NCBI RefSeq assembly: GCF_001194135.2
Contig: NC_068983.1
Span: 137,441,317-137,505,316 of the forward strand
DNA: 64,000 nucleotides
Source: Octopus bimaculoides
Taxonomy: Eukaryota
Direction: 5' to 3'
The position numbers were made by a program, and so were the translations under genes. The notes under the pieces were generated by a model, which was not told the origin of the DNA, ran no database searches, and was given only the letters and a program-made list of their open reading frames with translations. Shown piece after piece: positions 5,931 through 61,287 of this stretch. Every line of letters begins with the position of its first letter. The first letter of the stretch is position 1.

Positions 5931-6107
5931 ATGGTTCAGTCGTATGTCCGGAAAACAGACAATGGGAAGTGGTCATCTAGCCAGATGGTTTCTGCCGTAT
6001 CAGCAGTACTGTCTGGAAGTCTCAGTATTAGAAAAGCTGCTAAGAAGTTCGCAATCCCTAAAGCCACACTCGCTCGTCATTATAAAAAACCGTGTTATTC
6101 CTTCTTA
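5931..6107 (+). CDS. Variable exon V1: pipsqueak-type HTH DNA-binding domain (59 aa), phase-0 donor
   Basis: MVQSYVRKTDNGKWSSSQMVSAVSAVLSGSLSIRKAAKKFAIPKATLARHYK fits the HTH_psq pattern. Donor TTA|GTAAGT at 6107/6108. Confidence 0.85.
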
Positions 6108-7609
6108 GTAAGTAATTCTCACACGCACACACACATATGTATGTATATATATATTTCTATATATATAAAATATCGTTGTATCAAATTTGTTTATTACATA
6201 CATTACGTCTTTAAAGGCTACTTAATTCTAAATTAACTTAAATTTGTTTAATTTTCTTCATTTGCAATGTATGGACTTTTTTGTTATTTTCTATGAAATA
6301 TTTGAAAAATAATTCGATGGCATGTATTACGTATCTGGTGATAGCTTACTTTAAAAAGGTCTGTCAAAAAGAAAACAGTGAAGGGGAAGGTAGATGTTAT
6401 CCACATCAGAAATCGTTATTCGAACTCTTTACTACTAAAGCATTTTTTCAAGAATTATGTTTCTTGATAAAAATTAAAATTTTTATACTTACCCAGCAAT
6501 GTTGATTAGAATGCATAAATACTTATACACACACTAGCATTGCATTAAATATTAAACTGTCCATGGATTTATTCCAAAATAAGAAGGGTTCCACTTTCTA
6601 TTATCGACTGTTAGAACAGTATATGCACACAAATACATATATTTCATATGTATTTATATATTGTTGTGCATGTGTGTGTACATCTAGACATGTCTTCTGG
6701 CACATAATGACTTAGCAAGACGTTCAAACGTTAACTGAAACAATTCTAAATATATGTAGAGCTTAAAATTTATGCTTACAAAGAAAAGATTGACAGTGAG
6801 ACCTGACTTTGTAGTTACACTTGTGATTAGGTTCATCAACTCTTGGAACCAATCCCCGATGAAATAAAAACACTGACAACCTGTTGTTCATCATTGATCA
6901 ATCCGACCAAGCATAACCTGGGGCTAAACAAAGAGCCCTGTGCAGTTAGTTTCTTGGCCTAACTAAATAGCAGATGTCCTTTCAAATCACACCCTACCAT
7001 TTTAAGAATGTATGAGGGACATGGGACACCCAGTCATGACTTGGGGCTAAACAAACGCATACAATCAGATTAAATGGTTTCTATTAAGGACTGGAGAAAT
7101 ATAAGATTTTCTAAACTCAACTCTTCCTGTTCTCAACCATTACCTGATTTAAATTCAGGCATTTTTATTTTCATTCCAATGATCTTTGAAAACACATGTC
7201 ATATTGTTAACTGGGGATATAAACATCCACACTCACAACTGGCATCCCTATTGTTTCCATTTTCCAATTTCTCTTACAAGGCATTAGTTGACCTCCAGCT
7301 GTAGTACAAGACATTTGCCCAAGTTGCCACTTCGGATAACATGTTATGAAGTTAACTCTGTTCATATGGCCATGTGTCTATTATACAGTAATGCCTTGAT
7401 ATAAAAGTTACTCTTTTCCCAGAGATAGCTTGTAAAACGAAAACACATGAAGCAGAACAATAATTTCCCAGAAAAAATATTTTATCTGTAAAATTTATAA
7501 TACTCATAGATAGATGGCAATAAGACAACAGTAGAATGTAAAGAATATCAAGATCATTTATAATAAAAAAATATTTTTATAATCATTTTCTGAATCAATT
7601 TCACTTACA

Positions 7610-7810
7610 CTAGACTCATGCCACCATCACTTGCAGACACGATTGCCAATTTGCAAACACTTGTAGACGGACTTGTAGATTTCTTTTTACATAACAAGTC
7701 TAGAGTTGTTTGCTTAGAAGCTTTTTTTCACTCTCTAAATTTCTCAGTAATACACAGGAACATTTATGGTAGTAGAAATTTTTGCACTTCATTCAGAATT
7801 TGGATCTTGA
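7610..7810 (-). mobile_element. Fossil Tigger/pogo transposase C-terminus
   Basis: Minus strand reads DPNSE*SAKISTTIN...KKASKQTTLDLLCKKK with stops and frameshifts, resembling pogo/Tigger C-termini. Confidence 0.45.
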
Positions 7811-8249
7811 GTTTGAAAAATAAAACTCGTAATGTGAGGTATTAATGTATGTTAATTGCATCCATACAGCCACATGTAATGATGAACTAAATCTACCAAC
7901 ATTATTATGGATCGCTGAGTCCCCAGAAATAGCTGTTGGACTTATAATAACCCCTTTTTAATTCTCTCTGTTGTTTGTACTCTGTAAGTTGGACCTGTTG
8001 TTATAAATATATATTTATACTTCATCATCTGAAAGTATCCATCTTTTGCTTTCTCTTGTTTTGCATATATACATACTTCATATTTCATTCCCAAACTAAT
8101 ATAGTTGATATATCCAGTTTGTTTATTCACGTGATTGCCTCTATGTGTGTGTATATGTATAAGCAGGTACGTGGACACTACATATCCAGATGCTAGGTTC
8201 TCATGCTCACCTCTCTTATTAATACAACCTTTCTTCTTGATTTTCTTTT

Positions 8250-9680: not shown

Positions 9681-9776
9681 CATTTTGTTGGTGGCAATGG
9701 ACCTACACGAGACCACCCTGATCCTCTACCTGTCAGACCAATGAATGTTCTCCATTCCTCAGCTGGTTACATAGAT
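9681..9776 (+). CDS. Isolated phase-0/phase-0 exon encoding a THAP-domain C-terminal segment (32 aa)
   Basis: Acceptor TTTTCTTCCACTCCAG|; HFVGGNGPTRDHPDPLPVRPMNVLHSSAGYID; donor GAT|GTAAGT. Matches the tail of V8 (HFIGKNGPTPEHPDPIP). Confidence 0.7.
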
Positions 9777-15027: not shown

Positions 15028-15077
<50 letters not shown>

Positions 15078-17488: not shown

Positions 17489-17665
17489 ATGGGAAGGCCA
17501 AAGAAATATGCCACCGACGAGGAGCGTCGTGCTGCAAAAGCCTTGAGAGAGAGGGATCGGAGAGAGAGAGAAACTGCAGAAAAAAGGAGCAGACGTTTGG
17601 AAAAAATGAGAACGTCTGCACTAAGGAGAAGACAGAAACGTGCTAGTGCTGGCAATGTTGCTAAG
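17489..17665 (+). CDS. Variable exon V2: AT-hook-like GRPKK plus STPR-like charged helix (59 aa), phase-0 donor
   Basis: MGRPKKYATDEERRAAKALRERDRRERETAEKRSRRLEKMRTSALRRRQKRASAGNVAK. Donor AAG|GTAAAG at 17665/17666. Confidence 0.7.
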
Positions 17666-18485: not shown

Positions 18486-18560
18486 AAGTGAGCACACGTG
18501 ACTTTCAAAGTGAGCGCACGTGACTTTCAAAGTGAGAATAGAGACTTCAAAGTGAGGACA
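18486..18560 (+). repeat. 22-bp tandem repeat (2 near-perfect units plus degenerate ones) carrying CACGTGAC, directly upstream of V3
   Basis: AAGTGAGCACACGTGACTTTCA / AAGTGAGCGCACGTGACTTTCA / AAGTGAGAATAGAGACTTCA / AAGTGAGGACAC. Confidence 0.85.
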
Positions 18561-18609
18561 CATTTCATTTGCGTGACTTAAACAGCTTCGATAAAGTGAT
18601 TTTTTTGCA

Positions 18610-19002
18610 ATGCCTCGGCAAGCCGCATCCAGTGGACGTGGAACAAAAAAGCCGCCTGTGTCCAACGCCGCACGCAATCAACTCATAGATTGTTATGATC
18701 GTGGATCGAACTACAAGGACTTTGCTAAATCCATGGGAATTAATTTAAAGACTGCAAGCAGAATAATTTTAGACTATATAAAAACGGGCAAACGAGAAGC
18801 ATTACTCAAAGGCGGTAGATGCAATGTGAAAGTTGATGATGAGATGCGTGCCTACTTGTACGAAGCAATAAATAACAATCCATCTATCACCTTGCGGAAG
18901 ATAAATGAGGGTATGAGATTGAATTTGCCACAAAAACCACTTGTAAGCGATGGATGCATTTCACGAACTCTTGATCGCATGCTGCTAACAAGAAAAAAAT
19001 TG
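18610..19002 (+). CDS. Variable exon V3: Tc1/IS630-type transposase N-terminal bipartite HTH (131 aa), phase-0 donor
   Basis: RNQLIDCYDRGSNYKDFAKSMGINLKTASRIIL...KGGR...NPSITLRKI...VSDGCISRTLDRMLLTRKKL stops where the DDE domain would begin. Donor TTG|GTGTGT at 19002/19003 is weaker than the others. Confidence 0.75.
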
Positions 19003-20229: not shown

Positions 20230-20565
20230 ATGCCAGCTTGTGTTGTGGTAGGTTGTAAAGTAAGGGCTACCAAAGAAAATTCTGCGCTCGGCTTGCGGTT
20301 GCATAGATTCCCGCGAAACCCTCATCGGCGTCAGTTGTGGGTAAATGCTATAAACAGGCCAGACTGGATTGCTAGCGACAACGACCGTATCTGTGGCTTG
20401 CATTTCCACAGCCGATACCCCGTTCGTAATACAGCCAGTATTGATTATGTCCCTACAATATTTTCATCAAGGCCACAGGATGAATCTAACTTTGTTACCG
20501 AACAAAGACTGAAATGTTTCAACACTGTAAACAACAGTGCCACGAGATATCCTGATAATGTGATT
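20230..20565 (+). CDS. Variable exon V4: THAP domain (112 aa), phase-0 donor
   Basis: MPACVVVGC...HRFP...LWVNAI...ICGLHF...VPTIF has a complete C2CH signature. Acceptor CTGTAG|TCATG; donor ATT|GTAAGT at 20565/20566. Confidence 0.9.
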
Positions 20566-21557: not shown

Positions 21558-21700
21558 ATGGGTTGCTCTGTTTTCCTAGGGTGACTGACTAATCGCTTTC
21601 TTGGAATTTCTGTTCTGGTACAATCTTGATTGACTAGTTTTTCAAATGAGTGTCTTCATGATATTCATTCTGCTTTGTGCTCGCCACAAATCGAAATTTG
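21558..21700 (+). pseudogene. Possible strongly decayed THAP pseudo-exon
   Basis: MGCSVFLG*LTNRFLGIS...HSALCS in one frame with stops. The conserved W is missing and the spacing is short. Confidence 0.3.
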
Positions 21701-21840
21701 ATTTTTATTTTCTTTCGAAGCAGTTCTCCTTCAGCTCGGAAATAATCTAACAAAGCATGAAATATTTGATTTAGTCTTTGCTTAATTTCATTGAATATTG
21801 CACGCTGAAGGCTTTTTTATTTCCTCTTCTAAATGACGTT

Positions 21841-21861
21841 TTGCGCAAATTAGTGACGTCA
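21841..21861. promoter_or_regulatory. Adjacent C/EBP-type (TTGCGCAA) and CRE (TGACGTCA) palindromes
   Basis: TTGCGCAA at 21841-21848 and TGACGTCA at 21854-21861, upstream of the decayed THAP at 22027. Confidence 0.5.
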
Positions 21862-22026
21862 TTATGACGCCCTTACATCTATGACAAAGTAGTCTAGAAA
21901 TGGCATTTGGGACCTCGTGTTTGTGTTGTTCTTTGACCTCACCCCCATCGGGTTTTTTTCTTTTCTTTAGAAACTACACATTTGTAGAAAATAGGTTGGC
22001 AAAAGAAAAACAAGCTCCTTGTTACC

Positions 22027-22220
22027 ATGGTTACCTGCTGTGTTCTCTGTGGCTGTTAAGGGACGATGGCGTTTACCATAAGTTTCCGCGTTTTTTTAAT
22101 AAATTTGAGGTCTACATTGAATTTGTCCGTACTTTCAAAATATCGTCTATCTTCAATCTATCTAGCTTGATCCGTATTAAATTAGGTCTATGCATAGATT
22201 CCATACCAACTATACTTTAG
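22027..22220 (+). pseudogene. Decayed THAP variable exon (pseudo-exon)
   Basis: MVTCCVLCGC* then, after a frameshift, RDDGVYHKFPRFF...EFVR...DSIPTIL*. THAP start, HxFP and PTI motifs are present; W and CSxH are lost. Confidence 0.6.
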
Positions 22221-23517
22221 TCGACGAAGAAACAGCCTCTAGTAAAAGTACAGTTATGTCGCCGTCAGGAAAGAAAAGTTACAGCCGCTCCATGTAGGTG
22301 ATGACCAGTCAACATACTTGTGTTAGGCGCCTACGTTCTACTCCTGTTTTGTAATGACTCATTATTCGTGGACAGAATCATTTTATTTTAGGCTACTTTT
22401 CCAGAATTCCCGTCTTTTCAATCAATTCTAATTTTTTAGATTCCTCTTCAACATCTATCTCATGAGACTGCATTCAGGAGATACTGTAAATTTTTTTAAT
22501 TTGGACGTTCAAATTTTGGCTGCTGTTAAAGCATATAGAGCAGCAAACACTATTAGGATGCTTTTTTTTGGGGGGGGGGTAATAGAAGAAGTGTATTGTA
22601 TTGAACATTAGATGTGTTTATCTAGAGCTTCAAACGGAATTTAAGTGTAAATATATAAATAATTTTAACATTTTTGAAATAGTTTATGCACCCTGAAATT
22701 AATGTGCTAAACCACTACTGTAATAGATGGGATGGTGGGGGGGGGGGGTCAAGCTGTACGTCATAAGTAGTAGAGAGACTGAATTCAAGATCTGCTTAAA
22801 GGTGGTTGCTTTCGTGTATGTATGTGTGTGTGTATATATAAATTTGTATAAACTGTCTGGCGTTGAAGCAGGCTATTTTCTTTTAGTGAGTACTTTACCA
22901 TCGTTGTTAGTCAAGTTATTCTACAAGTCAAATTTTTAAAAAATATGAAATGAAAAATAAACGGAAATGGATATTCATTCGGGGTATAGTTACTGCGTTC
23001 ATTAAGAGTACATTGTTGTATAGATGTATGTTTATGCATACCCAGGTAACGTAAGATACGTCTAGATAGAGTTGTTTTGTTAATGTATCTTTCATTTTTA
23101 TTGAAATTTCAGTTTTTACGGTATTCGGTTTTGTTTAAAAGAAATATATTAGGCAGTAAATATTCGAAGAAGAAAATTAATAACGGGAGACAGCTTTGTA
23201 GGCCACCATCTTTAATGCGAATTTAGATAATGCGATTTAGTGAGTGTATCTGATTTTTCTATCTCCTACTTTTCTCTTAGCTGTAATGTGAAATGTTGGT
23301 TTTATTTCGGGGCGGGAGGTGGGAATGAGTGGAAGAGGAGAGAGAGAGAGATCAGTTGGCGCGTGTGGCCTTGTGGGAAAGAAGTTTAGATTGCTTGGTT
23401 ATCTAGCGTTCCTAGATTTAGAACACCACTGCTAAGTTAGTCTATCCTGCCGGTTACTTGTTAGTGTTTTGCATTTTCCTCGTATTGTCTGTTTTTGCAT
23501 ATGTTTATCATCGCGCC

Positions 23518-23970
23518 ATGTCTTTACGTACAGCTTCTAGTTCTTTTACGAAACGTAAACGAACCTATTTGACATTAGAGACCAAGTTAGAGATTCTTGG
23601 ACGGGCCGAATCTGGAGAAGGTTCATCTGCATTAGGCCGTATGTTCGGTGTTGGAGAGAGCACTATTCGTTCGATAAAAAAAAATGCTGACAAAATAAAG
23701 AATTCCGTGTTATACTCCTCGCCGTTTTCTGGAACGGTAACCAGGATAGGGAATACCGCGTTAAAAAGAACTGAAAAGGTGCTTGGAACTTGGATAACGA
23801 AACAGCTACAAAACAAGAAGTTTAGCCTCAGCACGATATGTATTAGAGACAAAGCACTGGCTATTTACGAGCGTTTTGTTCAAGACCAGGGTGGAAGTTA
23901 CGAACCTTTTGTTGCTAGTAAAGGATGGTTAAACAATTTTCTAAAGCGTACAGGCTTTGATTCGTTAAAG
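23518..23970 (+). CDS. Variable exon V5: CENP-B/pogo (Tigger-type) psq-HTH plus Tc5-HTH (151 aa), phase-0 donor
   Basis: KRKRTYLTLETKLEIL...GVGESTIRSIKKN...IRDKALAIY...FVASKGWLNNFLKR, truncated before the DDE domain. Donor AAG|GTAAAT at 23970/23971. GC-box at 23309. Confidence 0.92.
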
Positions 23971-24234: not shown

Positions 24235-24546
24235 ATGGTTCACTGTGTTGCTTTCGGTTGCAGTAATCAAACAGGAAGTGGTAGAAGTTTTTTCCGCTTT
24301 CCTGACAGCAACACAAGGCCACATATATACAAGGAATGGTTATCAAGGGTTAATCGGGCAGAATTTATCCCTTCGAAATACTCTAGTTTGTGTTCGGATC
24401 ACTTCGAACGAAACTGCTATGTAAAAGACCCTAATTTACTCAAGCACTGGGGCATCAAAATAAAACAACGACTTAAACCAGACGCGGTACCAACTATCTT
24501 CAACTTCAAACCAATCCGACGACGAGGAGCGAAGAAGCGGTTTGAG
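24235..24546 (+). CDS. Variable exon V6: THAP domain (104 aa), phase-0 donor
   Basis: MVHCVAFGCSN...FFRFP...EWL...LCSDHF...RLKPDAVPTIF followed by basic RRRGAKKR. Donor GAG|GTAGAT at 24546/24547. YY1-like CGCCATCTT at 24135. Confidence 0.9.
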
Positions 24547-24905: not shown

Positions 24906-25280
24906 ATGGAGCCTACTTGCAAGGCAAAGTGGTGGTGTATTGTACATCAGTGTAGCTCTGATTCGCGCAAGAATGTTAGTCTCTATCCATTCATGCGTGG
25001 TGTTCGCTTTTTCCCCTTTCCTACTGCCAAGAAAGATCCGTACATGCGTCAACTTTGGACGCAGCTAGTAAGACGTGGTGACAACTGGGATGGTCCAAAA
25101 AAACATCATCGCGTTTGCTCTAGACACTTTAAAGATGGAGAGCCTAGCCCTCAAAATCCTGCTCCGACTATTTTCCCATGGACACCTGCTCAAACAATCT
25201 TTCCTAAAATTGATTTTAGAGCTCGGGACAGTAAAAAGCTCTATGGTGGTAAAGCCACTTTGGAGTTTCCTCTTCCTCAA
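24906..25280 (+). CDS. Variable exon V7: THAP domain (125 aa), phase-0 donor
   Basis: WCIVHQC...FFPFP...LWTQLVRR...VCSRHF...PAPTIFPW. Donor CAA|GTAAGT at 25280/25281. GTCACGTGA at 24787. Confidence 0.9.
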
Positions 25281-25454
25281 GTAAGTTTTTCTTTTACCAC
25301 TTGAGTGTCTTAAACTAGGCTTTATTGGATTCTACTAAATATTTCATATCCTGCATATATCAGCGATTCTTATATTTAAGGTATTGCAAGTGTTTACGAA
25401 TGTCCGTTATTTTTCTTTTGATTTATCGATTGTAGGAACTTGGCTTGCCTTCCA

Positions 25455-25466
25455 TGCGCATGCGCA
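25455..25466. promoter_or_regulatory. Perfect NRF1 palindrome TGCGCATGCGCA
   Basis: Exact consensus; the palindrome extends to ATGCGCATGCGCAT. Confidence 0.55.
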
Positions 25467-26147
25467 TTGATTTATTGGCATTCTCCCCTCCCCCTCCCCC
25501 GTTTTATTTACTTCTTGCAAACGTCGGTTTTATTAATGCTCAAACTGTAATACTAATTAATGGTTGGTTCGATAATTGAAAGGCTCCAGAGATTTCATAT
25601 ACTTTCTCACATTCATCATTATCTTTTCGTGGCTGTATTTCGATAATAAAATATGTTAAAACGGTGTAACAGCGATGTCCTGTTTTTTTATATTCATTTA
25701 AATCAAGTGGTAAAGTAATGAAAGCTTCTTTCTCATTATTCATATACCTGTAAATACCTTGAGATAATGGAGCCGGCAGATGAACCGCTACATGGTCTTC
25801 TGAGCAGCTCCTAGCATTCCTCAAATTACATAATGCAGCAATTCTTCCTATTACAGTCATAAACACAAATCAAAATACGGTACAGACACATTTAAATACG
25901 TTTTATATCTCTGAAATAACGCCGTCAACTGTATATAATAGTGATGATTCTGGTTACTTTGTCGGCTTCGAAACAAATTTCGTGTATCATTTAAAAAGAG
26001 TTTGAGTCACTAACTACTATATCGAATCAAACAACAAAATTCAAACTTTTTTTTTCTTTTTGACTAAACATTTATTTTTAAAATATACACATTGGAAATA
26101 TAATCATTTCTTTATGGAGTTTGAATGGTGTATGTATTGTATAAGCT

Positions 26148-27587: not shown

Positions 27588-27626
<39 letters not shown>

Positions 27627-45857: not shown

Positions 45858-46232
45858 ATGGAATTCACTGTTACTAAACGTGGCGGCAGGAAATTACTAT
45901 ACAATGGATACGCTTATACTGTCGACAAGAAGAAAAATAATATTACATATTGGAAATGTGAAGAAAGAAGAAAATGCGTTGCAAGACTCAAAACAATTGA
46001 TGATGTTCTTCAGTATGATCCACCACCACATTCTCACCCACAAGATGCCTGTAGAAACGTTGTTCTCAAAACAATACAACAAATTACAGCAGGAGCTAAC
46101 GACACAGAAGTTACGAGTACGATAATTGAGAATTGTACACCGGCTTTACCTCAAGAAACAGCAAGTTCCCTATCCCTAAAGGAAAATCCAAACAGAAAAA
46201 GGAGAAAAATGGAAATATTTCAAACGCACAAA
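45858..46232 (+). CDS. Variable exon V12: FLYWCH zinc finger (Mutator-type, 125 aa), phase-0 donor
   Basis: TKRGGRKLLYNGYAY...YWKC..RKCVARL...HSH followed by basic NRKRRK. Acceptor TTTTATATAG| at 45834; donor AAA|GTAAAC at 46232/46233. Confidence 0.88.
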
Positions 46233-46570
46233 GTAAACATATCTACTTTTTTTTATATTATCATTTGTGTATTTTATCACACACTCAAATTTAATAGGAA
46301 AATTAGTGATATTCTTTAGCATTGGTTTTGAAACGCTAAATGAAAATCCTATTTATTTGATTCAAATTCTTAGAACTTGCTTCACATAATATATACTTTC
46401 ATTATTCAGGGCTTATACGGATTGAGACATCACACACACTCCTGTGTGTGTGTGTGTGTGTGTGCGCACGTATGTATGTCTACAGTACCCAGATATGCAC
46501 CTATACATAACAGGTGGATGTCGGTATGCACATACCTGTACGTATATATGCATATACTCATTTACTCTAT

Positions 46571-46622
<52 letters not shown>

Positions 46623-46746
46623 CCTAACATATATATATGTATCTATAGATACACACACACAACCTATATATCTGCATATAAATGTTCACTTTAGTGTCCC
46701 TGCTAAATTCTGGTGTTAGTGATGCGTCTGTCAGATATATATATAT

Positions 46747-47518
46747 AAACAAAACACAAAGGATTCTGCGGTACACGTGTTTCAAGCTTTATAGTTGTTA
46801 CATCAGTGTATAATTGACAGTATAAAGCTATCTTCAGCCGCAAATGTATTCTCTCCCAAGAATTATATCACATAGAAAGATGAGATATAAGAGGTGAGGT
46901 TCCGTTTGGTATTTTGTGTTGCAATATACCTCGTAGAATTCTTAATTTGATATATTTATACATAATTTCCTCGGTACTCCGGAATCCAACCCGTCTAAAT
47001 GGCTTAGATGTATCTTAATTTACTATCCAAATTTTCTCTTATTGTTTCTTAGATCACCCGCCTCACCGATTTGACTCCTTTTATTTTTATTTTTGTATGA
47101 ATATCTGTGTATTTTTCTTCTTAGTATTTTATATTCCTTATTTTATNNNNNNNNNNNNNNNNNNNNNNNNNNNNNNNCTTTAACACTACCCTTATAACTA
47201 ATATTAAATAGTATTGTTTACTTAGCGTTCACTACACACTGAATTGTGGCAAGGTATGGACGGATTCCGGAGTACCAAGGAAATTATGTATAAATATATC
47301 AAATTAAGAATTCTACGAGGTATATTGCAATACAAAATACCAAACGGAACCTCACCTCTTATATCTCATCTTTCTTCCTCCTTTAACTTCTATGTGATAT
47401 AATTCTTGGGAGAGAATACATTTGCGACTGAAGATAGCTTTATACTGTCTATTATACACTGATGTAACAACTATAAAGCTTGAAACATGTGTACCGCAGA
47501 ATCCTTTGTGTTCTGTTT
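46747..47518. mobile_element. MITE-like element with ~250-bp inverted arms (31-N gap inside)
   Basis: 46747-46995 is the reverse complement of about 47258-47518, with several mismatches and one indel. Confidence 0.7.
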
Positions 47519-47617
47519 TTATTTCTACATTTACAATTTATTCATTCGCCCCGACCACGAGCTGGAATACACAGGTGCTTGCAATTATCAAGTATTACCT
47601 CTAACATTTACTTTACC

Positions 47618-47649
<32 letters not shown>

Positions 47650-47809
47650 GATAAATGTATATATACACGTACAGGTATATATATATATATATATATATGT
47701 ATTATATATATTATATATACATGTATATATATGTTTCTATATGTATGTATATATATATTTATGTGTATATATATATATATATTCTATATATATGTATGTA
47801 TGTATATCC

Positions 47810-50340
47810 CAGGGTCACACAGGCCCACTCCTCCCACACCGTCAGAATTGGCACTCTCAACATCGGCACACTGAAAGGTAGGTCTGGTGAGATTGTTGAG
47901 ATGCTTGAACGGAGACGGGTAGATTTGTGCTGCATCCAAGAAGTAAGTTGGAGAGGAGGTTCTACGAGGTTCCTCACAGGCAAAGAACACAGATACAATA
48001 TTTTCTGGGCAGGGAACACTGACGGAGTCGGGGGCATGGGAATACTCCTAGCAGAGAAATGGGTTGATAAGGTAATTGAGGTAGTCAGAATATGTGACAG
48101 AGTACTTAAGATTAGACTAGTGCTTCATCATAGGTTAGCTACCGTCATCTCGGCCTATGCCCCTCAATCGGGACTACTGGATGGGAAGAAAGACCAATTC
48201 TACTACACCCTTCTGCAAACTACCTCATTGACGAATGACGGGGACCTTCTCTTTGTGGCTGGTGATTTCAATGGTCATGTTGGACGTCATGCAGGGGGCT
48301 TCCATGGCATTCATGGAGGCTATGGCTTCAGTTCCTGCAATGAGGAGGGAACCAGACTGCTGGAGTTCTGTGATGCAAACGATCTTATGGTTTGCCATGC
48401 CAACTTCAGGAAACCTGCCTGTCAACTAGTCACCTACTGTTCTGGTAGACACTCTAGCCAAATTGACTACATCCACGCCAGAAATAGGGAAAGAGGGCGA
48501 CTTATAGAATCCAAAACCTTCCCTGGCGAAGAATGTACCCCTTAACACAGATTAGTAGTTAGTGACTTCGGAATCAAGGCAGAAGTAGACCGGCTTGGAG
48601 GAGAAGGGTTTGGAAGCTTAAAGATCCTGAAAATGGACAGAGATTTAGAGACATACTACTTGAAGCATTTGACGAAATAGAAGGGGATATAGCATCATAC
48701 AACGTGGACGACAACTGGAGGTTTCTACGCGACAACCTGCTGAGAGCCACCGACCAGATCTGTGGCTGATGTAAAGTCCTCTCGCGACCCATAGTAACAT
48801 GGTGGTGGAACAATGTGGTTGACAGGGCTATTAGACAAAAGAAACAGGCTTGAAAGGACTGGAAGAACGGAGGTAGCAGGGAACTGTATCAGACTGCTGG
48901 AAGGGAAGCTAGGAGACAGGTTTACTTAGCCAGAGGGGAAGCAGATAAGAAAAAGTTTGCCAATGTTCTGTGCCGTGAGGACCAAAGACTTGAAGTATTT
49001 CGTGTTGCAAGACAGTGTGTGAGAGAGATGGTACACTTGCACTATATGAGGCTGCAAAGAAAGAGGTTTGGAGATGCCACTATGAAAGGTTGCTCAATAA
49101 AGAGAATGAATGGGAGAAAGAAAGTCTGCTGAATGTCGACCCAACAGAGGGACCAGCTATCCAAACTGACAGTACCATGGTAGATAAAGCAATTAAGACT
49201 ATGAAGACAGGGAAAGCCCCCGGCCCATCAGGAATCACCGCAGAGATGCTCAAAATATCTGGTAGTGTCGGCTATAGCCTAGTCACCCATACTGTTAACC
49301 AGGTGCTACACGAAGGAGTCATACCCAATGACTGATGTAGCAGCACCATAGTCAACTGTTACAAAGGTAATGGTGACACTTTAGATACAAATAATTACAG
49401 AGGTATCAAGTTGTTAGATCAGGTAATGAAAGTCACTGAGAGGGTCATAGCCCGACTAATTAGGGAGCTAGTCAGTTTAGATGAGATGCAGTTTGGGTTC
49501 ATGCCAGGGAAAAGCACCACTGATGCTATATTTCTGGTAAGACAGCTGCAGGAGAAATACCTAGCCAAGGATAAACCTCTGTACTTGGCTTTCGTTGATA
49601 TGGAGAAAGCCTTTGACAGGATCCCCTGATCCCTCATCTGGTGGTCAATGAGGAAACTAGGGATAGAAGAATGGTTAGTGAGAGCTGTGTGAGCCATGTA
49701 CAGGGACGCTGTCAGTAAGGTGAGGGTTGGCAATGAGTACAATGAAGAATTCTGGGTAGAGGTAGGGGTCCACCAAGGTTCTGTCCTCAGCTTCCTCCTA
49801 TTTATCATAGTCCTCCAGGCGATAACAGAGGTATTCAAGACAGGATGCCCCTGGGAGCTGCTCTACGCTGATGACCTTGCACTAATTGCTGAGTCACTAT
49901 CAGAACTAGAGAAGTTTCAGGTGTGGAAGCAGGGACTAGAATTGAAGGGCCTTAGAGTCAACCTAGCTAAAACCAAAGTCCTAATAAGTAGAAAGGTAGA
50001 CAAAACACAAACCCCTTCAGGTAAATGGCCCTGCTCGATCGGTACAAAAGGTGTATGTGGCAGATGTTCAGGTGCAATAAACACTGAAAATGTGCAGAAA
50101 ACAACTTCTGTCACATTCCAGGGAGAAAAACTGGACGTAGTTGATAGCTTCCGATATCTGGGTGACCAAGTTAGTAATGGGGGTGGGTGCGCTGAAAGTG
50201 TAGCTGCTAGAATAAGAATAGCCTGGGCAAAGTTCAGAGAGCTCTTACCTCTGCTGGTCACAAAGGGCCTCTCACTCAGAGTAAAAGGCAGACTGTATGA
50301 CGCATGTGTACGAACAGCCATGCTACATGACAGTGAAACA
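47810..50340 (+). mobile_element. RTE-clade LINE (APE endonuclease plus RT), inactivated by stops, 3' end lost in a gap
   Basis: RIGTLNIGTL, AYAPQ, GDFNGHVG, SQIDYI, KAPGPSGI, QFGF, AFVDMEKAFD, GVHQGSVLS, LLYADDL; several in-frame stops. Confidence 0.95.
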
Positions 50341-50887
50341 NNNNNNNNNNNNNNNNNNNNNNNNNNNNNNNNNNNNNNNNNNNNNNNNNNNNNNNNNNNN
50401 NNNNNNNNNNNNNNNNNNNNNNNNNNNNNNNNNNNNNNNNNNNNNNNNNNNNNNNNNNNNNNNNNNNNNNNNNNNNNNNNNNNNNNNNNNNNNNNNNNNN
50501 NNNNNNNNNNNNNNNNNNNNNNNNNNNNNNNNNNNNNNNNNNNNNNNNNNNNNNNNNNNNNNNNNNNNNNNNNNNNNNNNNNNNNNNNNNNNNNNNNNNN
50601 NNNNNNNNNNNNNNNNNNNNNNNNNNNNNNNNNNNNNNNNNNNNNNNNNNNNNNNNNNNNNNNNNNNNNNNNNNNNNNNNNNNNNNNNNNNNNNNNNNNN
50701 NNNNNNNNNNNNNNNNNNNNNNNNNNNNNNNNNNNNNNNNNNNNNNNNNNNNNNNNNNNNNNNNNNNNNNNNNNNNNNNNNNNNNNNNNNNNNNNNNNNN
50801 NNNNNNNNNNNNNNNNNNNNNNNNNNNNNNNNNNNNNNNNNNNNNNNNNNNNNNNNNNNNNNNNNNNNNNNNNNNNNNNNNNNNNNN
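50341..50887. other. Assembly gap (other gaps at 47147-47177 and 52763-52978)
   Basis: Runs of N. Confidence 1.
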
Positions 50888-51465
50888 GTTTTTTACGTGC
50901 CACCTGCACAGGAGCCAATCCAGCGGCACTGGCAACGACCTCGCTCGAATGATTTTCTAACATGCCACCGGCACAAGTTCCAGTAAGGCGACGCTGGTAA
51001 CGATCACGCTCAAATGGTGCTATTTACGGGCCACAAGCACGGAAGCCAGACAGCTGCTCTAGCAATGATCACACTTGGACAGTGCAGTTAGTGCTCCACT
51101 AGCACAGGTGCCAGTCATCGAATGTGGTTCAATTATGATTTCGATTTTACTTGCCCCAACAGGTATTTATAAGCAAAGTTTAGTGTCCAATGAAGGAGAG
51201 GTTGGCATGGGTGCCAGTTATCGGATTCGGTTTGATTTTGATTTCAGATTTCAAATTCACTTGCCTCAACAGGTCTTCGCAAGCAGAGTCCAATGAAGTA
51301 AAGATACAAATAAATGAGCTGGCTACACTTCTACCAGAGGCCACAGGTTATGCTCTTACTTGGCTTGCAATGGGCGATAGTCTGTTTGTAAACTGTCTAC
51401 CATGTGTAAACTTGTGGAACTTTTTTATGCCGAATATAATTGCCAATGCCTCTTTTTCAATTTGG

Positions 51466-52220
51466 CTATAATTTTTTTCCATTGGCAATAGCGTCCTTGA
51501 CATGAGCTATGGCCTTTTGGCTGCCATCTTCACATTTGTGTAGGAGTACAGCACCTACCCTGTACTCACTAACATCTGTTGCCAGTATCGTTTCCAACAT
51601 TGGATCGAGGTGTGTAAGCAACAAGTCTGAAGTTAACATGCTTTTTAGTTCCTCAAATGCTTTCTGGCATTTTCTGACCAAAACCATTTTGCATCATTTT
51701 TTAACAGCTCATTTAGTGGAACACTTATGTTGTGTATGTTTGGGATATATTCTTGATAGTAGTTTACCAAGCCTAAAAATGTTTGTAACAATTTGACATT
51801 TGTTGTGGGAGGCACATTCCATATTGTCATCATCCTTAATGGGTCTGGCCTTTATCCCCTTTTGTCAATTACTTGACTTACATATTTGATTTTTTTCATC
51901 AAAAATTCAGACTTTTCCTCTGTTGGTCTAAACTCATATTCATTTATTTTTCCAAATACTTTTTTAATATGTTTGAAGTGTTGCTCCACAGACTTGCTCT
52001 TTATCAAAATATCATTAAGATAAGCGATGGTGGTGATCAATGATGTTTGATCAAGCTCAGTAAGTCATTTGTGGAGTCCTACAAGGCACTTTATTGGGTT
52101 CTCTTCTATTCATAATTTACTTTAATGACATCATTGACTTCATCAAACACAACATAAGAATTTATGCAGTTGTCTGAATGCTTCTAAATGTAGGAGACCT
52201 GACAAATCTCCAATTGGATA
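51466..52220 (-). mobile_element. Degraded Ty3/Gypsy RT-RNase H fragment
   Basis: IAYLNDILI, LQTFLGLVNYY, KAFEELKSMLTSDLLLTH...TDVSEYRVGAVL in three frames. Confidence 0.85.
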
Positions 52221-52344
52221 TGATCTGTTATTCAGTAGGTGAAAAAACACAATCTACAGCTAAATAAGGATATGTTCACATGTACCACTCTGCATGTATT
52301 CGTGTAGATGATTCTTTTAAACATCTTGATATTATTGGGTAGAT

Positions 52345-53893
52345 TTTGATCCTTTCACCTGCACGATTTTCATTCAGAAAAAAAAACTCAGAATGTTTGT
52401 ATGGAATTAAGTACCCTGATCTCCTAATTATGCTGCAAACTCCTTATTTTTTTTTTTGGAAAAAAGGGAGGAGGTCTGGTCACCACCCATCCCCCATATT
52501 CTGGAATCATTGGAATTTTTTTTTTTTCGTTGAATGAATTCTGGTGACTTCCTAATATGCTACAGAACCGTTTTTGGATCCGGAAAATGGGGTGGGGTGA
52601 AGTGAAAGCCTTGGAAATTTCACCTCCCACCTCCATTGATCTTGCATGATTTTCACTAAGAAAAAAATACTCGGATTTTTTGCATGGAATCAAGTAACCT
52701 GACCTCCTAATATGCTGTAAACCACTTATTTTTGTTCGGAAAAAAAGGGTGTGTGGGAAACCNNNNNNNNNNNNNNNNNNNNNNNNNNNNNNNNNNNNNN
52801 NNNNNNNNNNNNNNNNNNNNNNNNNNNNNNNNNNNNNNNNNNNNNNNNNNNNNNNNNNNNNNNNNNNNNNNNNNNNNNNNNNNNNNNNNNNNNNNNNNNN
52901 NNNNNNNNNNNNNNNNNNNNNNNNNNNNNNNNNNNNNNNNNNNNNNNNNNNNNNNNNNNNNNNNNNNNNNNNNNNNNNAAACGGGGTGGGGTGAAACCCT
53001 CGGAAATTTCACCCACACTCCCATTTTCAAATAATTTTTGCTATTTCTTTCTTTATCCATAATTTTAGATAACATTTTGCAGAAATATGTTTTCTCCACA
53101 CACAAAACTGAAACGCATTTCGGCACTAGAAATAGATTTTCTCTTTGCAATTTTTGGCGTCGAAATTTGTTTCATTTTGTGGGGGGAGTTGAGTGGGTGA
53201 CGAAGTTTACCGAAACATTGAATGGATAACAATCTATCGTAATTATATATATCATTATACATCATCATCACCATCATCATTTAACGTCTGCTTTTTATGC
53301 TGGCATGGGTTGAACGGTTTGACAGGACCGGCAAGCCAGGAAAATCTATTCGGGATTATTATATATATTATATCCAGTGATTTTAAGAGGTAGGGAAAAG
53401 ATATTTTGTTAATATTACACTTTTGCTCCGTTTCACTCATACATGCAAAAACTCTAACGTGTTTTTCTTAAGATGAATTCATCGTTTATCTCTCCGCACT
53501 TCGTTACCCCTAACTTCTATAACCTCTGCATTTTCACTTATTTATTTCAAACTTCTTTGAATTTTCAATCTAATGTAATCTACACTCTCTCGAAATCCTA
53601 TTTCTGCAAAATCTTATCTAAAATGATGGGTAAAGAAAGAAATAGCAAAACATATTTGAAAATGGAGGTGGGGGGTGAAATTTCCGCGGGTTCCACACCA
53701 CCCCGTTTTCCTGACCCCCAAAAAGGTTTAGTAGCATATTAGGTCACCAGAATTCACTCAAGGAAAAAAAAAATTCCAATGATTCGGGGATGTGGGGGGG
53801 GGGTCCGATTTACCCCCTTCCTTTTTTTCCGAACAAAAATAAGGAGTTTGCAGCATAGGAGGTCAGGACACTTGATTCCACGCAAAAAATTCG

Positions 53894-53930
<37 letters not shown>

Positions 53931-53955
53931 CTTAGTGAAAATCGTGCGGGTGAAA
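52345..53955. mobile_element. Large non-autonomous inverted-repeat element with ~290-bp arms and internal partial copies
   Basis: 52345-52635 is inverted relative to about 53660-53955. Termini are only loosely piggyBac-like. Confidence 0.55.
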
Positions 53956-54496
53956 AATTCAAATAGTACCTATTATTGTTTATGCAATGCTTGTATTTTA
54001 GGACATGGAGACAGTATTTTATTTTTATAAATCGTTTTGAGTTGTGGTTTAATTCGTGATCATGTATATAGCTTGTAATGGAGACACAATTTTGACACAA
54101 AAAATATAATTGTTGACTTGTTTACGAAGTGTCAAACACACCCATATTTTCACGACAAAAGTTAGAGACGAAACTCCTCTTACATAAGGTTTATTTATGC
54201 GAATAAGAATAGCGACATTTACTATCCATCTCTTTTAACGGTTTTCTCAGAATGTTCATGTATATGTGATTGTTTCTTTCCTACTTCGGTTAACAAGTTC
54301 TTTATGACGCGACAATTCGCTTAACGTTCATCACTTCATTGTACATTAACGAGAGCCGTACGAGATCACGTTTTTACTTGAATGTTAACTTCACGTAACT
54401 GGAGTTAAAATTAAGGATCCCCCCCCCCCCGACACACTTAACTCTCATTGGAGATTTGTCTCTGTTCTGTTTTGCAAAATAAATTTTCGAATAGTC

Positions 54497-54934
54497 ATGT
54501 CATCTAAACCCAAAACAAAGAGAAAGCGCAAAGTCATAACGATCCAACAAAAACAGGAAATTATCAACAAATTCGAACAAGGCTTTAAAAGAAGTGTTCT
54601 TTGTACTGAATACGGGCTCCCCCCTTCGACTGTTGCAACCATATGTGCTCAAAAAGAAAGACTAAAATCTGTGAAGGTAATTGATAAATCAACCAGAGTC
54701 TTTAAAAACAGGTCTTTCATAGTCGAAGTAGAGAAGCGTTTGTTAATGTGGATAAAGGAAAAACAAAAGACGGGGGACCAAGTAAATATGGAAGTTATTC
54801 GTGAAAAAGCCTTAGAGATTTATGAACATGTGAAGAACAGCTTCCCCCGTAGTTCAGATTACGAAATTCGTCCATTTAAGGCTAGTCAAGGTTGGTTTCA
54901 TAAATTTAAAAAGAGAGCAGAAATTGCGAACTTG
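54497..54934 (+). CDS. Variable exon V13: CENP-B/pogo psq-HTH plus Tc5-HTH (146 aa), phase-0 donor
   Basis: KRKRKVITIQQKQEII...YGLPPSTVATI...VEKRLLMWI...IREKALEIY...FKASQGWFHKFKKR. Acceptor AATAG|TCATG; donor TTG|GTAAGT at 54934/54935. Confidence 0.92.
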
Positions 54935-57601: not shown

Positions 57602-57801
57602 GCAGGCTCATCAAATAAAAACTTATATTTAAACAAAAAAAAGCAGCCTCCTAGCTCTCCTGCTACAGTTCTTATCTCAGACAGTAACCATCCTCCATCT
57701 CCACCTGCCAAAATTCCTAAGAGGCAGGCTTTTCTCAAAGAATTTCAGGAAGAAAATTTGAAAATAAAGAAAAATTGTCAAGAAAATGATTTTACTGACA
57801 G
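57602..57801 (+). CDS. Constant region 2 (paralog), exon A (phase 0 in, phase 2 out)
   Basis: TTTGTAG|GCAGGC; AGSSN...VLISDSNHPPSPPAKIPKRQ aligns with AGPSN...VLIPDDSPPQPSPAKIQKKQ; donor AG|GTAACT. Confidence 0.85.
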
Positions 57802-57894
57802 GTAACTAAATGACTTTTTGACAGCTTCTTACTATGCAAGTATTTTCTGATGAGTTCATGCATTTATCATAATTTTTATCTCAATAAATTTCAG

Positions 57895-58189
57895 GCAAAA
57901 TATTGGTCATATCTCTAAGATAGCTGAGAATTCTCAGGAACCTTCAATCAAAAACCTTATCTGTGTGGTTGAGGAGTCTGAAAATATGCCAGATCCAGTT
58001 CGATTCTCTACTTTTCAAGTTCCAATACCTACTACGCAACCACAGGCCATTGAAATACCACAGCCTCAAGGGAAGAAAATATTTATTCTTGCTGATCATC
58101 AGAAAAATGTAATGTCCAGCCTAGCATTGCTATGGAAGAGTGGAAAATTATGTGATGCTAGTATTGACAATGGTTCATCTACAGTGATG
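57895..58189 (+). CDS. Constant region 2, exon B: N-terminal part of BTB/POZ
   Basis: TTTCAG|G; ...ILADHQKNVMSSLALLWKSGKLCDASIDNGSSTVM; donor ATG|GTAAGT. Confidence 0.9.
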
Positions 58190-58512
58190 GTAAGTTTAAT
58201 TAAAGACTTTATTATGTTAATTTTTTAATCTTTTCCTATATTTGTTTTTCTTTGAGCTTAATAATCCTGAAAAAATTCAAATAATTGCAAGGATTGTTGG
58301 AACAGAAGATTTTAAGCATAGATACTATGATACCTATGTTTGGTGTAGTGTGGAGCATGTTCTGTGTGAACATATTAACTCTGCGAAAGGTTCTTCTAGA
58401 TAACCACATCCAAATATTTATTTGGGTTATACTACTCCTACACCTTTGTGCACACCCAGTGTTGTGATAACATTATTGGCAATGAGATATTCAAACCCCT
58501 GAAGACATAACA

Positions 58513-59257
58513 ATTGGCAATGAGGATATTCGAACTCAAGCTGGATAGATTGTTGTTTGGAACATGGAAGAATCACTAGCTTCAGTAATTGAATTACAGA
58601 AACAACAACAGCAGCAGCAGTTGGTGGAATTGCAGAAGCAACAGCAATTGTTAATACAGCTGTTACTCAACAAAACACCTCTGATACGGTCGCAAACTTC
58701 ATCAGTGAAGAAATTTTCAATCACAAACTGATCATTGTCTTATCTATATATATATGGGTTGAGGAAAGGAATCCTTGCCCATACTGTTGATTACAATGCT
58801 GTGGTACTATATTGCTAAACTGCTTTTAAGATGAAGTTTATACCAGCTAAGAAATTAGAACACTCTCATTGTTTATCAAGACTGATTTTGAAAAATATTG
58901 AACCGTTTGAGGATACTGTGATTGCAGCATTACAAGCAGAAAATGAAATTTAAAATGTTTTATGTAATATCATATGTGAACTACCAGTTACATTACAAGA
59001 CATAAAATTAAAAGTGGGAAACAATCAATTCATTAAAAAAAATGTAAGAAATGCTGAGGGTTAAAAGAGATAAAAATATGCGTTTTACTGAACGCAACAC
59101 AATTTCGAACCTATTTTCAATGTGTGACAGGGTGTTAATGCATGCACAAAGAATCATAGTGCCAGCTACACTACATAAGCGATTACTAAAGGAATTTCAC
59201 ATTGGTCACCCTGGGATTTCGAGAATGAAATCATTAATAAGAAGTTATGCGTATTAA
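58513..59257 (+). mobile_element. Internally deleted Gypsy remnant in intron 2 of constant region 2
   Basis: PBS-like TTGGCAATGAGGAT, gag-like start MEESLASVIELQKQQQ, and integrase zinc-binding region RIIVPATLHKRLLKEFHIGHPGISRMKSL. Confidence 0.7.
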
Positions 59258-60279
59258 ATCTACCCAGCTATTAAATCTACCCAGCCTATGTGGGTTATAT
59301 TTAGCCCATGTCAGCATGGAAATTCGGATGTAAAATGTTGATGATGAACATTTCTGAATACTCTGGGGCGAAGTTTTCATAAAATATTCAGTTGTAGTTG
59401 GTGGAAATGGCGATATATATATATATATATATACCTAATTTCTATCTAAGTTTGAATTTAAAGGGAAGTAACACGTATTTTCTGTATGGCTACTACTGGT
59501 AGTTTTCATATCTAATCCTTAGTTGGTAAGTGATTTTCAAAAAACATAATTATTTTCCCAAAAGGCTCAATAAACCTGCAAAAGGATATGGACAGGTAGT
59601 GCATGTGTTCAAATTGACCGTACTATTTCATCATCATCATCATATGTCCGTTTTCCATGCTGCTGTTTTTAAAATCATTCCTTATTTTCTTTGACTTAAA
59701 AAACACTGATATAACCTGATCTGTATTACTTTAAAAGTATGTTATATGCCTATAGCTTTGAGGCAAATGCACTCAACTATTGGCCTGGTAATGATATAAT
59801 GAAAAACATTTTAATATTGGGATGGTGGGAAAAAAGTAAAAAAGTTTAAGAAAGTATTTCAGTTGAGATAAAAATATTCTTATATTATGTATTGTGTTTC
59901 ATACTTCATGAAGACATGCAAACATTAAAGTTGCTATGTCACCTAATTTGTATTAGTGCTGTATTAAAAATTTTTGATCCCTTAAAATTTTTCAGACTAT
60001 TTGTAACACAGCTCTGGCAAAATATAAACTACAGAATTCATAGAGAGAATTGTCATTTCATTTTTGAAACTAGGCCAATTCGTTATCCTTTTAGATATGC
60101 TCTATAGAATTTAATTACAACACCAAAATTAAAGGCATCTATGCATGAAAGTATTTACTTATAACTATACTCCGATTAAAGAAAAGATTTATAGTTAAAA
60201 GTGAAAAATGTTTTAAGAGATTTTCCCTGGTATTAATTATTTTATAAATCTCAAGATCTTTTTTTTTTATATATTTCAG

Positions 60280-61287
60280 GTACATAAAGTTGTCTTATTT
60301 GCTGTATGTCCTAAACTGTTGTCAGTATTTGGTGCAGAGATGCTCTCTCAGAACTTTCTCCACATTAACTTACCACAGGAAGTTAGCACAAAAGCCTTAG
60401 ATGCTTTTGCTGATTATATGTATAATGGAATTCTAGATCTTGATCCAAATATTTTACATCAGTTAAAAATCATTGCAAAACGTTTGGAAATGAAAGATTT
60501 TGAACAACTGTGTGATAGTCAACTGCCTAATACAACACATCAGCAACCTATTACAACTACTAATGCATTTGTTGCTTCCAACCCAATGACAGGTAATGTA
60601 TCTGTGTCACAAAATGTTACAACACCGAATCAGCTTTCTCCATGTTTCTCTTCAATATCATCTAACTTTCTTTCAACTAACACTACACTATCCAGTGGTA
60701 TTAATGACAAGATTTCAAGAGCTGAATTATTACCCAAAGAAAATAGAGTTACATTGTTTGGAAACAACTCTAAGGTTGCCTTATTAGATACTATAGATAT
60801 CAATTCCTCTGGTAATTTTGTCATGGCTCCCACGGTGAAGAATGAACCCATGGAACCTGAAGAAAGCAGATATGAGCATAGTAAGTTCTATTCATCCATT
60901 CCAATTTCAAACGGTTCTCGGACACGAAGCACCATGCTGAATTGTAAGGATGCATCCACTTCAGAATTTGTTTTACCATTGTTAGATACCACACATAGCA
61001 AAGCAATAACAAATGTGATGCGTGGAACATCATCTAAATTAAAATCTAATACATTTGAAAGCTCTTTACATTCTAACTTAGAATTTGCATTGCGTACTGA
61101 AAAGAACATGTGTTTCCAATCTAACCCCATAAGAGAAAACCCTTCTAAACCACAAAATCAAACTATAACAATTCAGTCATTTGATAACATGGTGACATCT
61201 AGTGGCAATAAAAGTGTGTATCCTGCAGGACATTTTACAGTAGGAAGGAACAGAAAACAATTATCATCAGTGCAACTGCCAGTATGA
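60280..61287 (+). CDS. Constant region 2, exon C: BTB/POZ core plus Ser/Thr/Asn-rich tail, stop TGA
   Basis: TTTCAG|GTACAT; VHKVVLFAVCP...AFADYMYNGILDL...IAKRLEMKDFEQLC. Constant region 2 totals 500 aa. Confidence 0.92.
   Translation, partial: VHKVVLFAVCPKLLSVFGAEMLSQNFLHINLPQEVSTKALDAFADYMYNGILDLDPNILHQLKIIAKRLEMKDFEQLCDSQLPNTTHQQPITTTNAFVASNPMTGNVSVSQNVTTPNQLSPCFSSISSNFLSTNTTLSSGINDKISRAELLPKENRVTLFGNNSKVALLDTIDINSSGNFVMAPTVKNEPMEPEESRYEHSKFYSSIPISNGSRTRSTMLNCKDASTSEFVLPLLDTTHSKAITNVMRGTSSKLKSNTFESSLHSNLEFALRTEKNMCFQSNPIRENPSKPQNQTITIQSFDNMVTSSGNKSVYPAGHFTVGRNRKQLSSVQLPV

Follow-up and report, generated by a model that had tools for sequence, protein, structure and literature searches.

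A probable array of alternative first exons joining diverse predicted DNA-binding modules to constant BTB exons in Octopus bimaculoides

The 64,000-nt stretch of Octopus bimaculoides DNA analysed here (the window) corresponds to ~137,441,317-137,505,316 of chromosome CM046603.1 (GCA_001194135.2). It contains 13 exons (V1-V13), called variable exons below, that carry predicted DNA-binding modules, as well as two three-exon constant regions, A and B, that encode a BTB domain (Table 1). Constant region A belongs to the RefSeq gene LOC106877732 ('uncharacterized protein'), and the spliced body A is 100% identical to isoforms of this gene. Constant region B belongs to LOC106877745 (gene B). RefSeq holds at least 36 isoforms of LOC106877732 (X2 to X36 seen) and two of LOC106877745. 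The O. vulgaris orthologue of LOC106877732 has a gene range of 177.5 kb. The window contains the 3' third of the ~177-kb O. bimaculoides LOC106877732 together with the whole of its small tandem paralogue LOC106877745. Most first exons of LOC106877732 sit upstream of the window, and the array runs far beyond base 1. In both genes the layout is very probably an array of alternative first exons, each with a DNA-binding module, that are spliced to three constant BTB exons.

Table 1 Features of the window. Positions count from the first base of the window, and the end of each variable exon is the last base before its donor. The last column gives the RefSeq isoform that is identical to the protein predicted from the variable exon and the constant body (V1-V11, constant A; V12 and V13, constant B).
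Feature	Position	Strand	Content	Basis	RefSeq isoform
V1, variable first exon	5931-6107	+	HTH_psq, 59 aa	Pfam HTH_psq E 2.4e-11	LOC106877732 X33, XP_014782223.1 (via the 9681-9776 exon)
Shared intermediate exon HFVGGNGPTRDHPDPLPVRPMNVLHSSAGYID	9681-9776	+	THAP C-terminal half, phase 0 at both ends	RefSeq isoforms	
V2, candidate variable first exon	17489-17665	+	STPR-like basic repeat, 59 aa	donor AAG/GTAAAG, phase 0	unannotated in RefSeq
V3, variable first exon	18610-19002	+	paired-like Tc1/mariner-type bipartite HTH, 131 aa	sub-threshold Pfam HTH_29, HTH_28, HTH_32, PAX	LOC106877732 X18
V4, variable first exon	20230-20565	+	THAP, 112 aa	Pfam THAP E 4e-15	LOC106877732 X26
V5, variable first exon	23518-23970	+	CENP-B_N + HTH_Tnp_Tc5 (pogo-type), 151 aa	Pfam E ~8e-13 for both	LOC106877732 X14
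V6, variable first exon	24235-24546	+	THAP, 104 aa	Pfam THAP E 6e-16	LOC106877732 X28
V7, variable first exon	24906-25280	+	THAP, 125 aa	Pfam THAP E 1e-12	LOC106877732 X24
V8, variable first exon	29580-29852	+	unsplit THAP, 91 aa	Pfam THAP E 1e-7	LOC106877732 X34, XP_052822534.1
V9, variable first exon	30364-31365	+	QRICH1 + DUF3504 (Crypton tyrosine-recombinase-derived) module, 334 aa	sub-threshold Pfam	LOC106877732 X3 (98% identical to O. sinensis X3)
V10, variable first exon	32322-32774	+	single C2H2 (GAGA-like) finger, 151 aa	C-x4-C-x12-H-x4-H; weak Pfam zf-C2H2_aberr, GAGA	LOC106877732 X15
V11, variable first exon	33057-33416	+	zf-C17orf113-type zinc finger, 120 aa	Pfam zf-C17orf113 E 7e-4, below cut-off	LOC106877732 X25
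Constant A exon 1	34114-34349	+	phase-0 acceptor, no Met, basic linker resembling a nuclear localization signal, ends in phase 2	starts AGPSNQ...	
Constant A exon 2	34435-34738	+	linker + N-terminal half of BTB	Pfam BTB, spliced body	
Constant A exon 3	35087-36151	+	C-terminal half of BTB + 270-aa tail, to stop	Pfam BTB, tail motifs	
V12, variable first exon of gene B	45858-46232	+	FLYWCH, 125 aa	Pfam FLYWCH E 4e-13	LOC106877745 X2, XP_014782241.1
V12-isoform intron	46233-54496		three assembly gaps + retroelement debris	gap positions, domain scan	
V13, variable first exon of gene B	54497-54934	+	CENP-B_N + HTH_Tnp_Tc5, 146 aa	Pfam E 1e-14, 5e-10	LOC106877745 X1, XP_014782240.1
Constant B exon 1	57602-57801	+	phase-0 acceptor, no Met, ends in phase 2	sequence reading	
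Constant B exon 2	57895-58189	+	linker + N-terminal half of BTB	Pfam BTB, spliced body	
Constant B exon 3	60280-61287	+	C-terminal half of BTB + tail, to stop	Pfam BTB, spliced body	

All 13 variable exons are open from the ATG to the last base, comprise a whole number of codons and are followed by GT, so that each donor is in phase 0. Stop codons follow soon after each GT, in the intron. The ends and donors are those given for all 13 exons in a preliminary description of the window, which also assigned one DNA-binding module to each exon. This assignment is solid for eight exons and only plausible for five (V2, V3 and V9-V11). V1, V4-V8, V12 and V13 pass the curated cut-off of Pfam; V3, V9, V10 and V11 are below it but coherent. 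V2 has no Pfam match. Its alignment with the STPR domain of P0146, a family member, starts at the first Met and shows 48% identity over 50 aa (pairwise E 2e-7). A single-sequence AlphaFold2 model of V3 contains two three-helix bundles at low confidence (mean predicted local distance difference test score (pLDDT), 53.7). The QRICH1 and DUF3504 matches of V9 are ordered as in Crypton-derived proteins. The best 18 fold matches of a V9 model (six sequences, mean pLDDT 50.8) are all Cre recombinase, with weak TM-scores of ~0.25, in agreement with the Pfam matches. A scan of the window for other frames that open with ATG and reach a good donor in phase 0 gave no convincing extra variable exon. Across the locus as a whole, the predicted modules comprise THAP, pogo/CENP-B, psq, Brinker, paired-like helix-turn-helix (HTH), FLYWCH, STPR, C2H2, C17orf113 finger and Crypton recombinase-like types. 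Variable exons of the same class are 25-50% identical to each other within the locus.

The two constant regions are paralogous (B is 48% identical to A; P0029). Both have three exons, a phase-0 acceptor and a first exon without Met, as initially described, and each first exon is preceded by a pyrimidine-rich tract ending in AG. Pfam places one BTB domain in each spliced body (E 9e-11 and 6e-11). The isoforms of LOC106877732 have a common body of 534 aa, which is 100% identical in those retrieved, and the longest O. bimaculoides product of this gene is 952 aa. The closest solved relatives of the BTB domain are IVNS1ABP (KLHL), ZBTB17, ZBTB18 and BCL6, and the alignment covers the N-terminal extension of the dimer-forming class. 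The fly BTB of CG6765, a member of the Tramtrack (TTK) group, matches at E 4e-4 only, and a direct check of constant A found no TTK motif (LRWN; FxLRWN-type). Since one BTB is common to all isoforms, homodimers and mixed dimers are expected. The tail of constant A contains VKTEP at residues ~372-376, which fits the psi-K-x-E-P SUMO consensus, and a terminal YPVGLF. The products are probably dimeric, sequence-specific and repressive chromatin factors, and isoforms would mix through the common BTB.

To relate the exons to annotated isoforms, we assembled the protein predicted from each variable exon and its constant body and searched the sequence collection for identical entries. For 12 of the 13 variable exons, the match is an exact RefSeq isoform. 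The preliminary description had joined every donor directly to the acceptor at 34114 or 57602, and 11 of these direct joins match RefSeq exactly. V1 joined directly to constant A has no exact match in the collection; it reaches constant A only through the exon at 9681-9776. None of V2-V13 is an internal exon in any of the isoforms found. The NCBI pipeline retains alternative variants only when they have transcript or RNA-seq support.

At least 17 RefSeq isoforms contain the 9681-9776 exon, at 100% identity, in their N-termini. The exon is used by V1 and by every first exon upstream of the window. Its inclusion tracks genomic order, in that only first exons upstream of 9681 contain it, as predicted by cis-splicing to the nearest downstream acceptor. 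Two further shared intermediate exons, LKTQNQINEEYDV and GDTQNVQISKQTHRFST, both outside the window, link upstream first exons toward 34114. The first exons of X29, X30 and X32 (P0052, P0048 and P0049) encode the N-terminal part of THAP only and end in '...CSK'. The zinc-ligand His of the THAP C-x2-H motif is the first residue of the 9681-9776 exon, and Pfam scores THAP only on the joined sequence. The 9681 exon therefore completes several split THAPs, such that one C-terminal half serves several N-terminal halves. V8 is an unsplit paralogue of this split subtype, with 45-51% identity to X29, X30 and X32 when the part encoded by the shared exon is included.

Exons upstream of the window contribute at least 17 further N-termini, of THAP, FLYWCH, CENP-B/Tc5, Brinker, and THAP plus psq types, as well as a second DUF3504 module. 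The initial proposal was that the locus makes at least 11 + 2 transcription factors with a variable N-terminal DNA-binding domain and a constant BTB. The design stands, and the count is an underestimate, because there are at least 36 isoforms and most first exons lie upstream of the window.

The sequence composition upstream of the variable exons suggests that each has its own promoter. In the 400 nt preceding each of the 13 variable exons, the observed/expected (o/e) ratio of CpG ranges from 0.77 to 1.90 (1.24 for V2), and the background of the window is 0.38. The constant and intermediate acceptors are preceded by sequence with ratios of 0.00-0.35, except at constant A exon 2 (0.78), where exon 1 falls within the 400 nt. 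Islands without CpG depletion in the window largely coincide with variable exons. Such sequence in a CpG-depleted genome has the look of unmethylated promoters, which points to one promoter per variable exon. Three CpG-undepleted stretches (21601-22500, 25251-26250 and 26751-27850) adjoin no recognised variable exon; possible identities are untranslated leader exons, promoters of unannotated transcripts and decayed former variable exons. At 18490-18520, ~95-115 nt upstream of the V3 ATG, there is a tandemly duplicated 22-nt unit with CACGTGAC (E-box).

The same design is found in other cephalopods. Isoforms of the same types are annotated in O. sinensis (LOC115209932), O. vulgaris and Argonauta hians. 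Logan RNA-seq contigs of 2.4-4.6 kb have uninterrupted open reading frames (ORFs) that join THAP, FLYWCH, DUF3504 or Brinker/Tc5 to BTB. We label contigs and proteins 'cuttlefish-type' where the protein clusters of the contigs include Acanthosepion pharaonis proteins. Two such contigs from different runs, one with THAP (L001) and one with FLYWCH (L007), are 99.9% identical over 2162 nt of 3' sequence; 5' of the junction they are unrelated, their 5' untranslated regions (UTRs; 37 and 222 nt) included. In a third cuttlefish-type form (P0099), an internal THAP donor is joined to the same acceptor as in these two. A gene model of the A. pharaonis genome (P0090) wrongly chains the THAP exon and part of the FLYWCH exon, indicating that these exons are collinear in A. 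pharaonis too. VKTEP-type and PYPVGLF/PYPISLF-like motifs recur in the otherwise fast-evolving tails of constant B, of the cuttlefish-type proteins and of the other members read, and may be sites where effectors bind.

When 1.84 billion representative proteins were searched with a profile, 26 representatives matched at E < 1e-30. The BTB is central or C-terminal in all 22 that hold a whole BTB; the other four are fragments or a repeated-BTB protein. Proteins with an internal BTB outrank ordinary N-terminal BTB proteins, which start at ~E 1e-22 and dominate below ~1e-18. Eight new representatives have a recognisable N-terminal domain, namely THAP, CG-1, CENP-B/Tc5, STPR, or THAP plus a complete Tc1-like DDE transposase, and weaker matches add FLYWCH and DUF3504. 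The named taxa with the family are octopods and the cuttlefish A. pharaonis. A profile search of a word-indexed database with the BTB alignment gave four fragments only.

The representative proteins P0152 and P0153 have a near-identical constant body and different N-terminal domains. P0141 (Tc5-type) and P0142 (STPR-type) show no difference up to the end of the linker or in the 15 residues that open the last constant exon; thereafter, identity is ~80%. Gene conversion between paralogues, chimeric assembly or different source species are possible causes of this divergence. In P0145, THAP is followed by a complete Tc1-like transposase (HTH and DDE_3) and then by the BTB body; the protein is otherwise nearly identical to P0143, in which the same THAP and BTB body occur, and it may represent a recent capture that still holds the catalytic domain.

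For the product of one variable exon, identity between Octopus and Argonauta is 94% in THAP, 54% in the adjacent linker, 97% in the shared exon, 98% in the BTB and 80% in the tail. This conservation between species, together with the 25-50% identity of same-class exons, indicates that the array is old and maintained. Because octopod and cuttlefish-type species have the same design, it probably predates the coleoid cephalopod split.

According to the explanation that we favour, transcription would most likely start from a promoter immediately in front of the variable exon that is chosen. The donor of this exon would be spliced in cis to the next downstream acceptor. For V2-V11 this acceptor would be 34114; V1 and the upstream exons would be joined to 9681-9776 and then to 34114, and V12 and V13 to 57602. 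The intervening variable exons, which would not be used as internal exons and may lack usable acceptors, would be removed as intron. The product would consist of a DNA-binding domain, a basic linker, a dimerising BTB of the ZBTB/KLHL type and a low-complexity tail with the SUMO-consensus and PYPVGLF motifs. In this way, the locus would provide a combinatorial repertoire of regulators of chromatin or transcription, probably repressors, each of them sequence-specific.

Several observations weigh against this explanation. The RefSeq XP models are Gnomon predictions. V2 plus constant A has no exact match in the collection and corresponds to no annotated isoform. In X4, X7 and an old X4 model, psq and THAP exons from upstream serve as internal exons, and in X4 and X7 the psq exon follows the THAP exon, so not all variable exons are strictly first exons. 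CpG enrichment is an indirect sign of promoters. No k-mer above background is common to the upstream 400 nt of all 13 exons. ACGTGA-type E-box half-sites are enriched upstream (8 observed, 1.3 expected) but occur at five of the 13 exons. DNA binding is predicted for all modules, from sub-threshold matches in the case of V2, V3 and V9-V11, and dimerisation and repression are carried over from the family.

An unlikely alternative is that a single promoter and a leader exon serve the whole locus and that splicing picks among mutually exclusive internal variable exons, as in Dscam. Some upstream isoforms do have a THAP exon or a short leader (MKNVINEDDF...) joined ahead of another variable exon, indicating that some variable exons have usable acceptors. 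However, each variable exon has its own ATG and CpG-undepleted upstream sequence, while the constant acceptors lie in CpG-depleted sequence. The L001 and L007 transcripts, which are of one gene, have nothing in common 5' of the junction, including the 5' UTRs. Complementarity of the docking/selector kind, sought between the post-donor introns and the intron before 34114, does not exceed chance: the longest matches are 9-12 nt, which is the random expectation. In addition, phase-0 donors throughout, in the absence of mutual splicing, fit use as first exons.

It is still less likely that the variable exons are decaying transposon fragments, spliced opportunistically, and that the isoforms are mostly non-functional noise. 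Every module type is transposase-associated, the locus is full of transposable-element remnants, and P0145 retains its complete transposase between THAP and BTB. However, all 13 reading frames are intact, and no remnant of a Tc1-type catalytic domain like that of P0145 was detected in the window. The DNA-binding part is far better conserved than the linker between Octopus and Argonauta, same-class exons have diverged to an extent that indicates an old and maintained array, and the cuttlefish-type transcripts have the same design.

Two further alternatives are highly improbable. In one, each variable exon is a small gene of its own, which Gnomon has chained to whichever BTB exons lie closest. 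Separate THAP or QRICH1-like proteins do occur in the first octopus annotation (UniProt A0A0L8G... entries), as does one 1402-aa model chaining V5 to V10. But every exon ends in a phase-0 GT with intronic stops soon after, the constant first exons have no start codon, RNA-seq contigs of another cephalopod hold a DNA-binding domain and BTB on one uninterrupted ORF, and the annotations of three species agree. In the other, the variable and constant parts are transcribed separately and joined by trans-splicing as in mod(mdg4) and lola, for which the analogy with the fly BTB loci and a read-through-like isoform linking two tandem paralogues in O. sinensis (P0010) would speak; trans-splicing is unnecessary, as the exons are collinear on one strand in the order that cis-splicing needs, and the 9681 exon is used exactly in genomic order.

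The isoform just mentioned (P0010; O. sinensis LOC115209901 X2) joins constant exon 2 of one paralogue ('...GSSAVM') to constant exon 1 of another ('AELSNQ...') in phase 0-0 and looks like a read-through. A join of 34738 to 57602 in the window would likewise keep the frame; it is not among the isoforms found here.

The rest of the window contains assembly gaps and mobile-element remnants. Runs of N occur at 47147-47177, 50341-50887 and 52763-52978, all between the V12 donor and the V13 ATG. No model exon or reading frame crosses any of the three gaps, and the length of the intron from V12 to 57602 is the sole uncertain quantity. Long ORFs spanning the gaps were rejected as artefacts of translated N. 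The introns of gene B contain a frameshifted long interspersed element (LINE) endonuclease and reverse transcriptase at 47823-50340 (+), broken by a 547-N gap, an RNase H fragment of a long terminal repeat (LTR) element at 51469-51687 (-), and an integrase zinc-finger fragment at 59051-59254 (+). Two apparent Tc1/mariner remnants lie near the start of the window. At 577-1299 (-), ORFs resemble a mariner-type transposase by eye, and a Pfam scan gave no match to them. At 4595-4885 (+), frameshifted HTH ORFs have a weak HTH_32 match, within the same 2.2-kb CpG-undepleted island as V1. Rfam, tRNA and tandem-repeat scans of the window revealed nothing relevant. A scan of the 10 kb beyond gene B found no further family exons, and a database look-up found no record of an O. 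vulgaris orthologue of gene B.

The preliminary description did not recognise the locus as a described gene. Keyword searches of an incomplete library turned up nothing on the locus or its LOC identifiers, so a description may exist; the gene is already modelled in RefSeq as 'uncharacterized'. The models are thus public, and apparently they have not been recognised. In one survey, a BTB was noted in most THAP and CENP-B factors of octopus and read as a transposon-derived component; isoforms are unmentioned there (PMC10027918).

That one locus encodes dozens of predicted transcription factors bears on counts of cephalopod transcription factors. A single gene draws on about ten unrelated, mostly transposase-derived DNA-binding folds. 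Since capture appears to have been repeated many times at one site, the locus is a natural system for studying transposase capture. It would also be a tractable case of transcription-factor specificity set by promoter choice, and the design may have contributed to coleoid regulatory novelty. A more speculative idea, which we consider doubtful, is that the array is the cephalopod counterpart of the KRAB zinc-finger system, or else a combinatorial code of transcription-factor identity. In the former case, each exon would keep the specificity of its source transposon family (P-element/THAP, pogo, Tc1/mariner, Crypton and others), and the common BTB would recruit repressors to those families. In the latter case, promoter choice across the ~177-kb array would be stochastic or cell-type specific, and mixed BTB dimers would give cells, for example neurons, a protocadherin-like code.

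In organisation, the locus resembles the alpha and gamma protocadherin clusters and UGT1A. In all of them, tandem first exons with their own ATG and 5' splice site are cis-spliced to constant 3' exons, and the variable part provides specificity and the constant part a common effector. Individual promoters, as in those systems, are likely here from the CpG regions upstream. However, the octopus products are predicted nuclear proteins with DNA-binding and BTB domains rather than membrane receptors or enzymes, and the variable exons span about ten unrelated fold families instead of one paralogous family. The locus also has a hierarchy of shared intermediate exons, including the THAP C-terminal half, and a search upstream of its exons revealed no conserved promoter element like that of the protocadherins.

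The domain content has two other parallels. ZBTB factors such as BCL6 and ZBTB17 also combine a long-form, dimer-type BTB with a sequence-specific DNA-binding domain, but their BTB is N-terminal and their C2H2 fingers C-terminal in a fixed arrangement, whereas the octopus BTB is central or C-terminal. Host-transposase fusion genes, which reportedly arise by 'transposase capture' in vertebrates, likewise have transposase-type domains (THAP, pogo/CENP-B, Tc1-like HTH, Crypton-like) spliced to a host domain without the catalytic domain. The octopus locus differs in that many captures are stacked on one host body, in place of a separate gene for each capture. The transposon origin of individual exons is suggested by the module family to which each belongs.

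The preliminary description called the locus a reversed lola/mod(mdg4)-type system, which is apt as a functional analogy and not as homology. Like lola, mod(mdg4), fru, broad and ttk, it combines one BTB with many alternative DNA-binding exons in one locus and produces dozens of isoforms, between which the BTB allows mixing. FLYWCH is also found in mod(mdg4), and psq-type HTH in pipsqueak. However, the constant BTB is N-terminal in the fly proteins, whereas the octopus proteins begin with the DNA-binding domain and have the BTB after it. Fly isoforms differ in the exons chosen at the 3' end and octopus isoforms in the first exon, at the 5' end; in octopus, trans-splicing is not needed. In addition, the octopus BTB is ZBTB/KLHL-like without the TTK motif, and the TTK-group BTB has been reported to be arthropod-specific (PMC11426971). 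With the domain order reversed, the choice at the 5' end, a non-TTK BTB and a TTK group reported to be arthropod-specific, the likeness to lola and mod(mdg4) is convergent, not homologous. Multiplexing of one BTB with many DNA-binding domains therefore arose independently in cephalopods, with the opposite gene topology.

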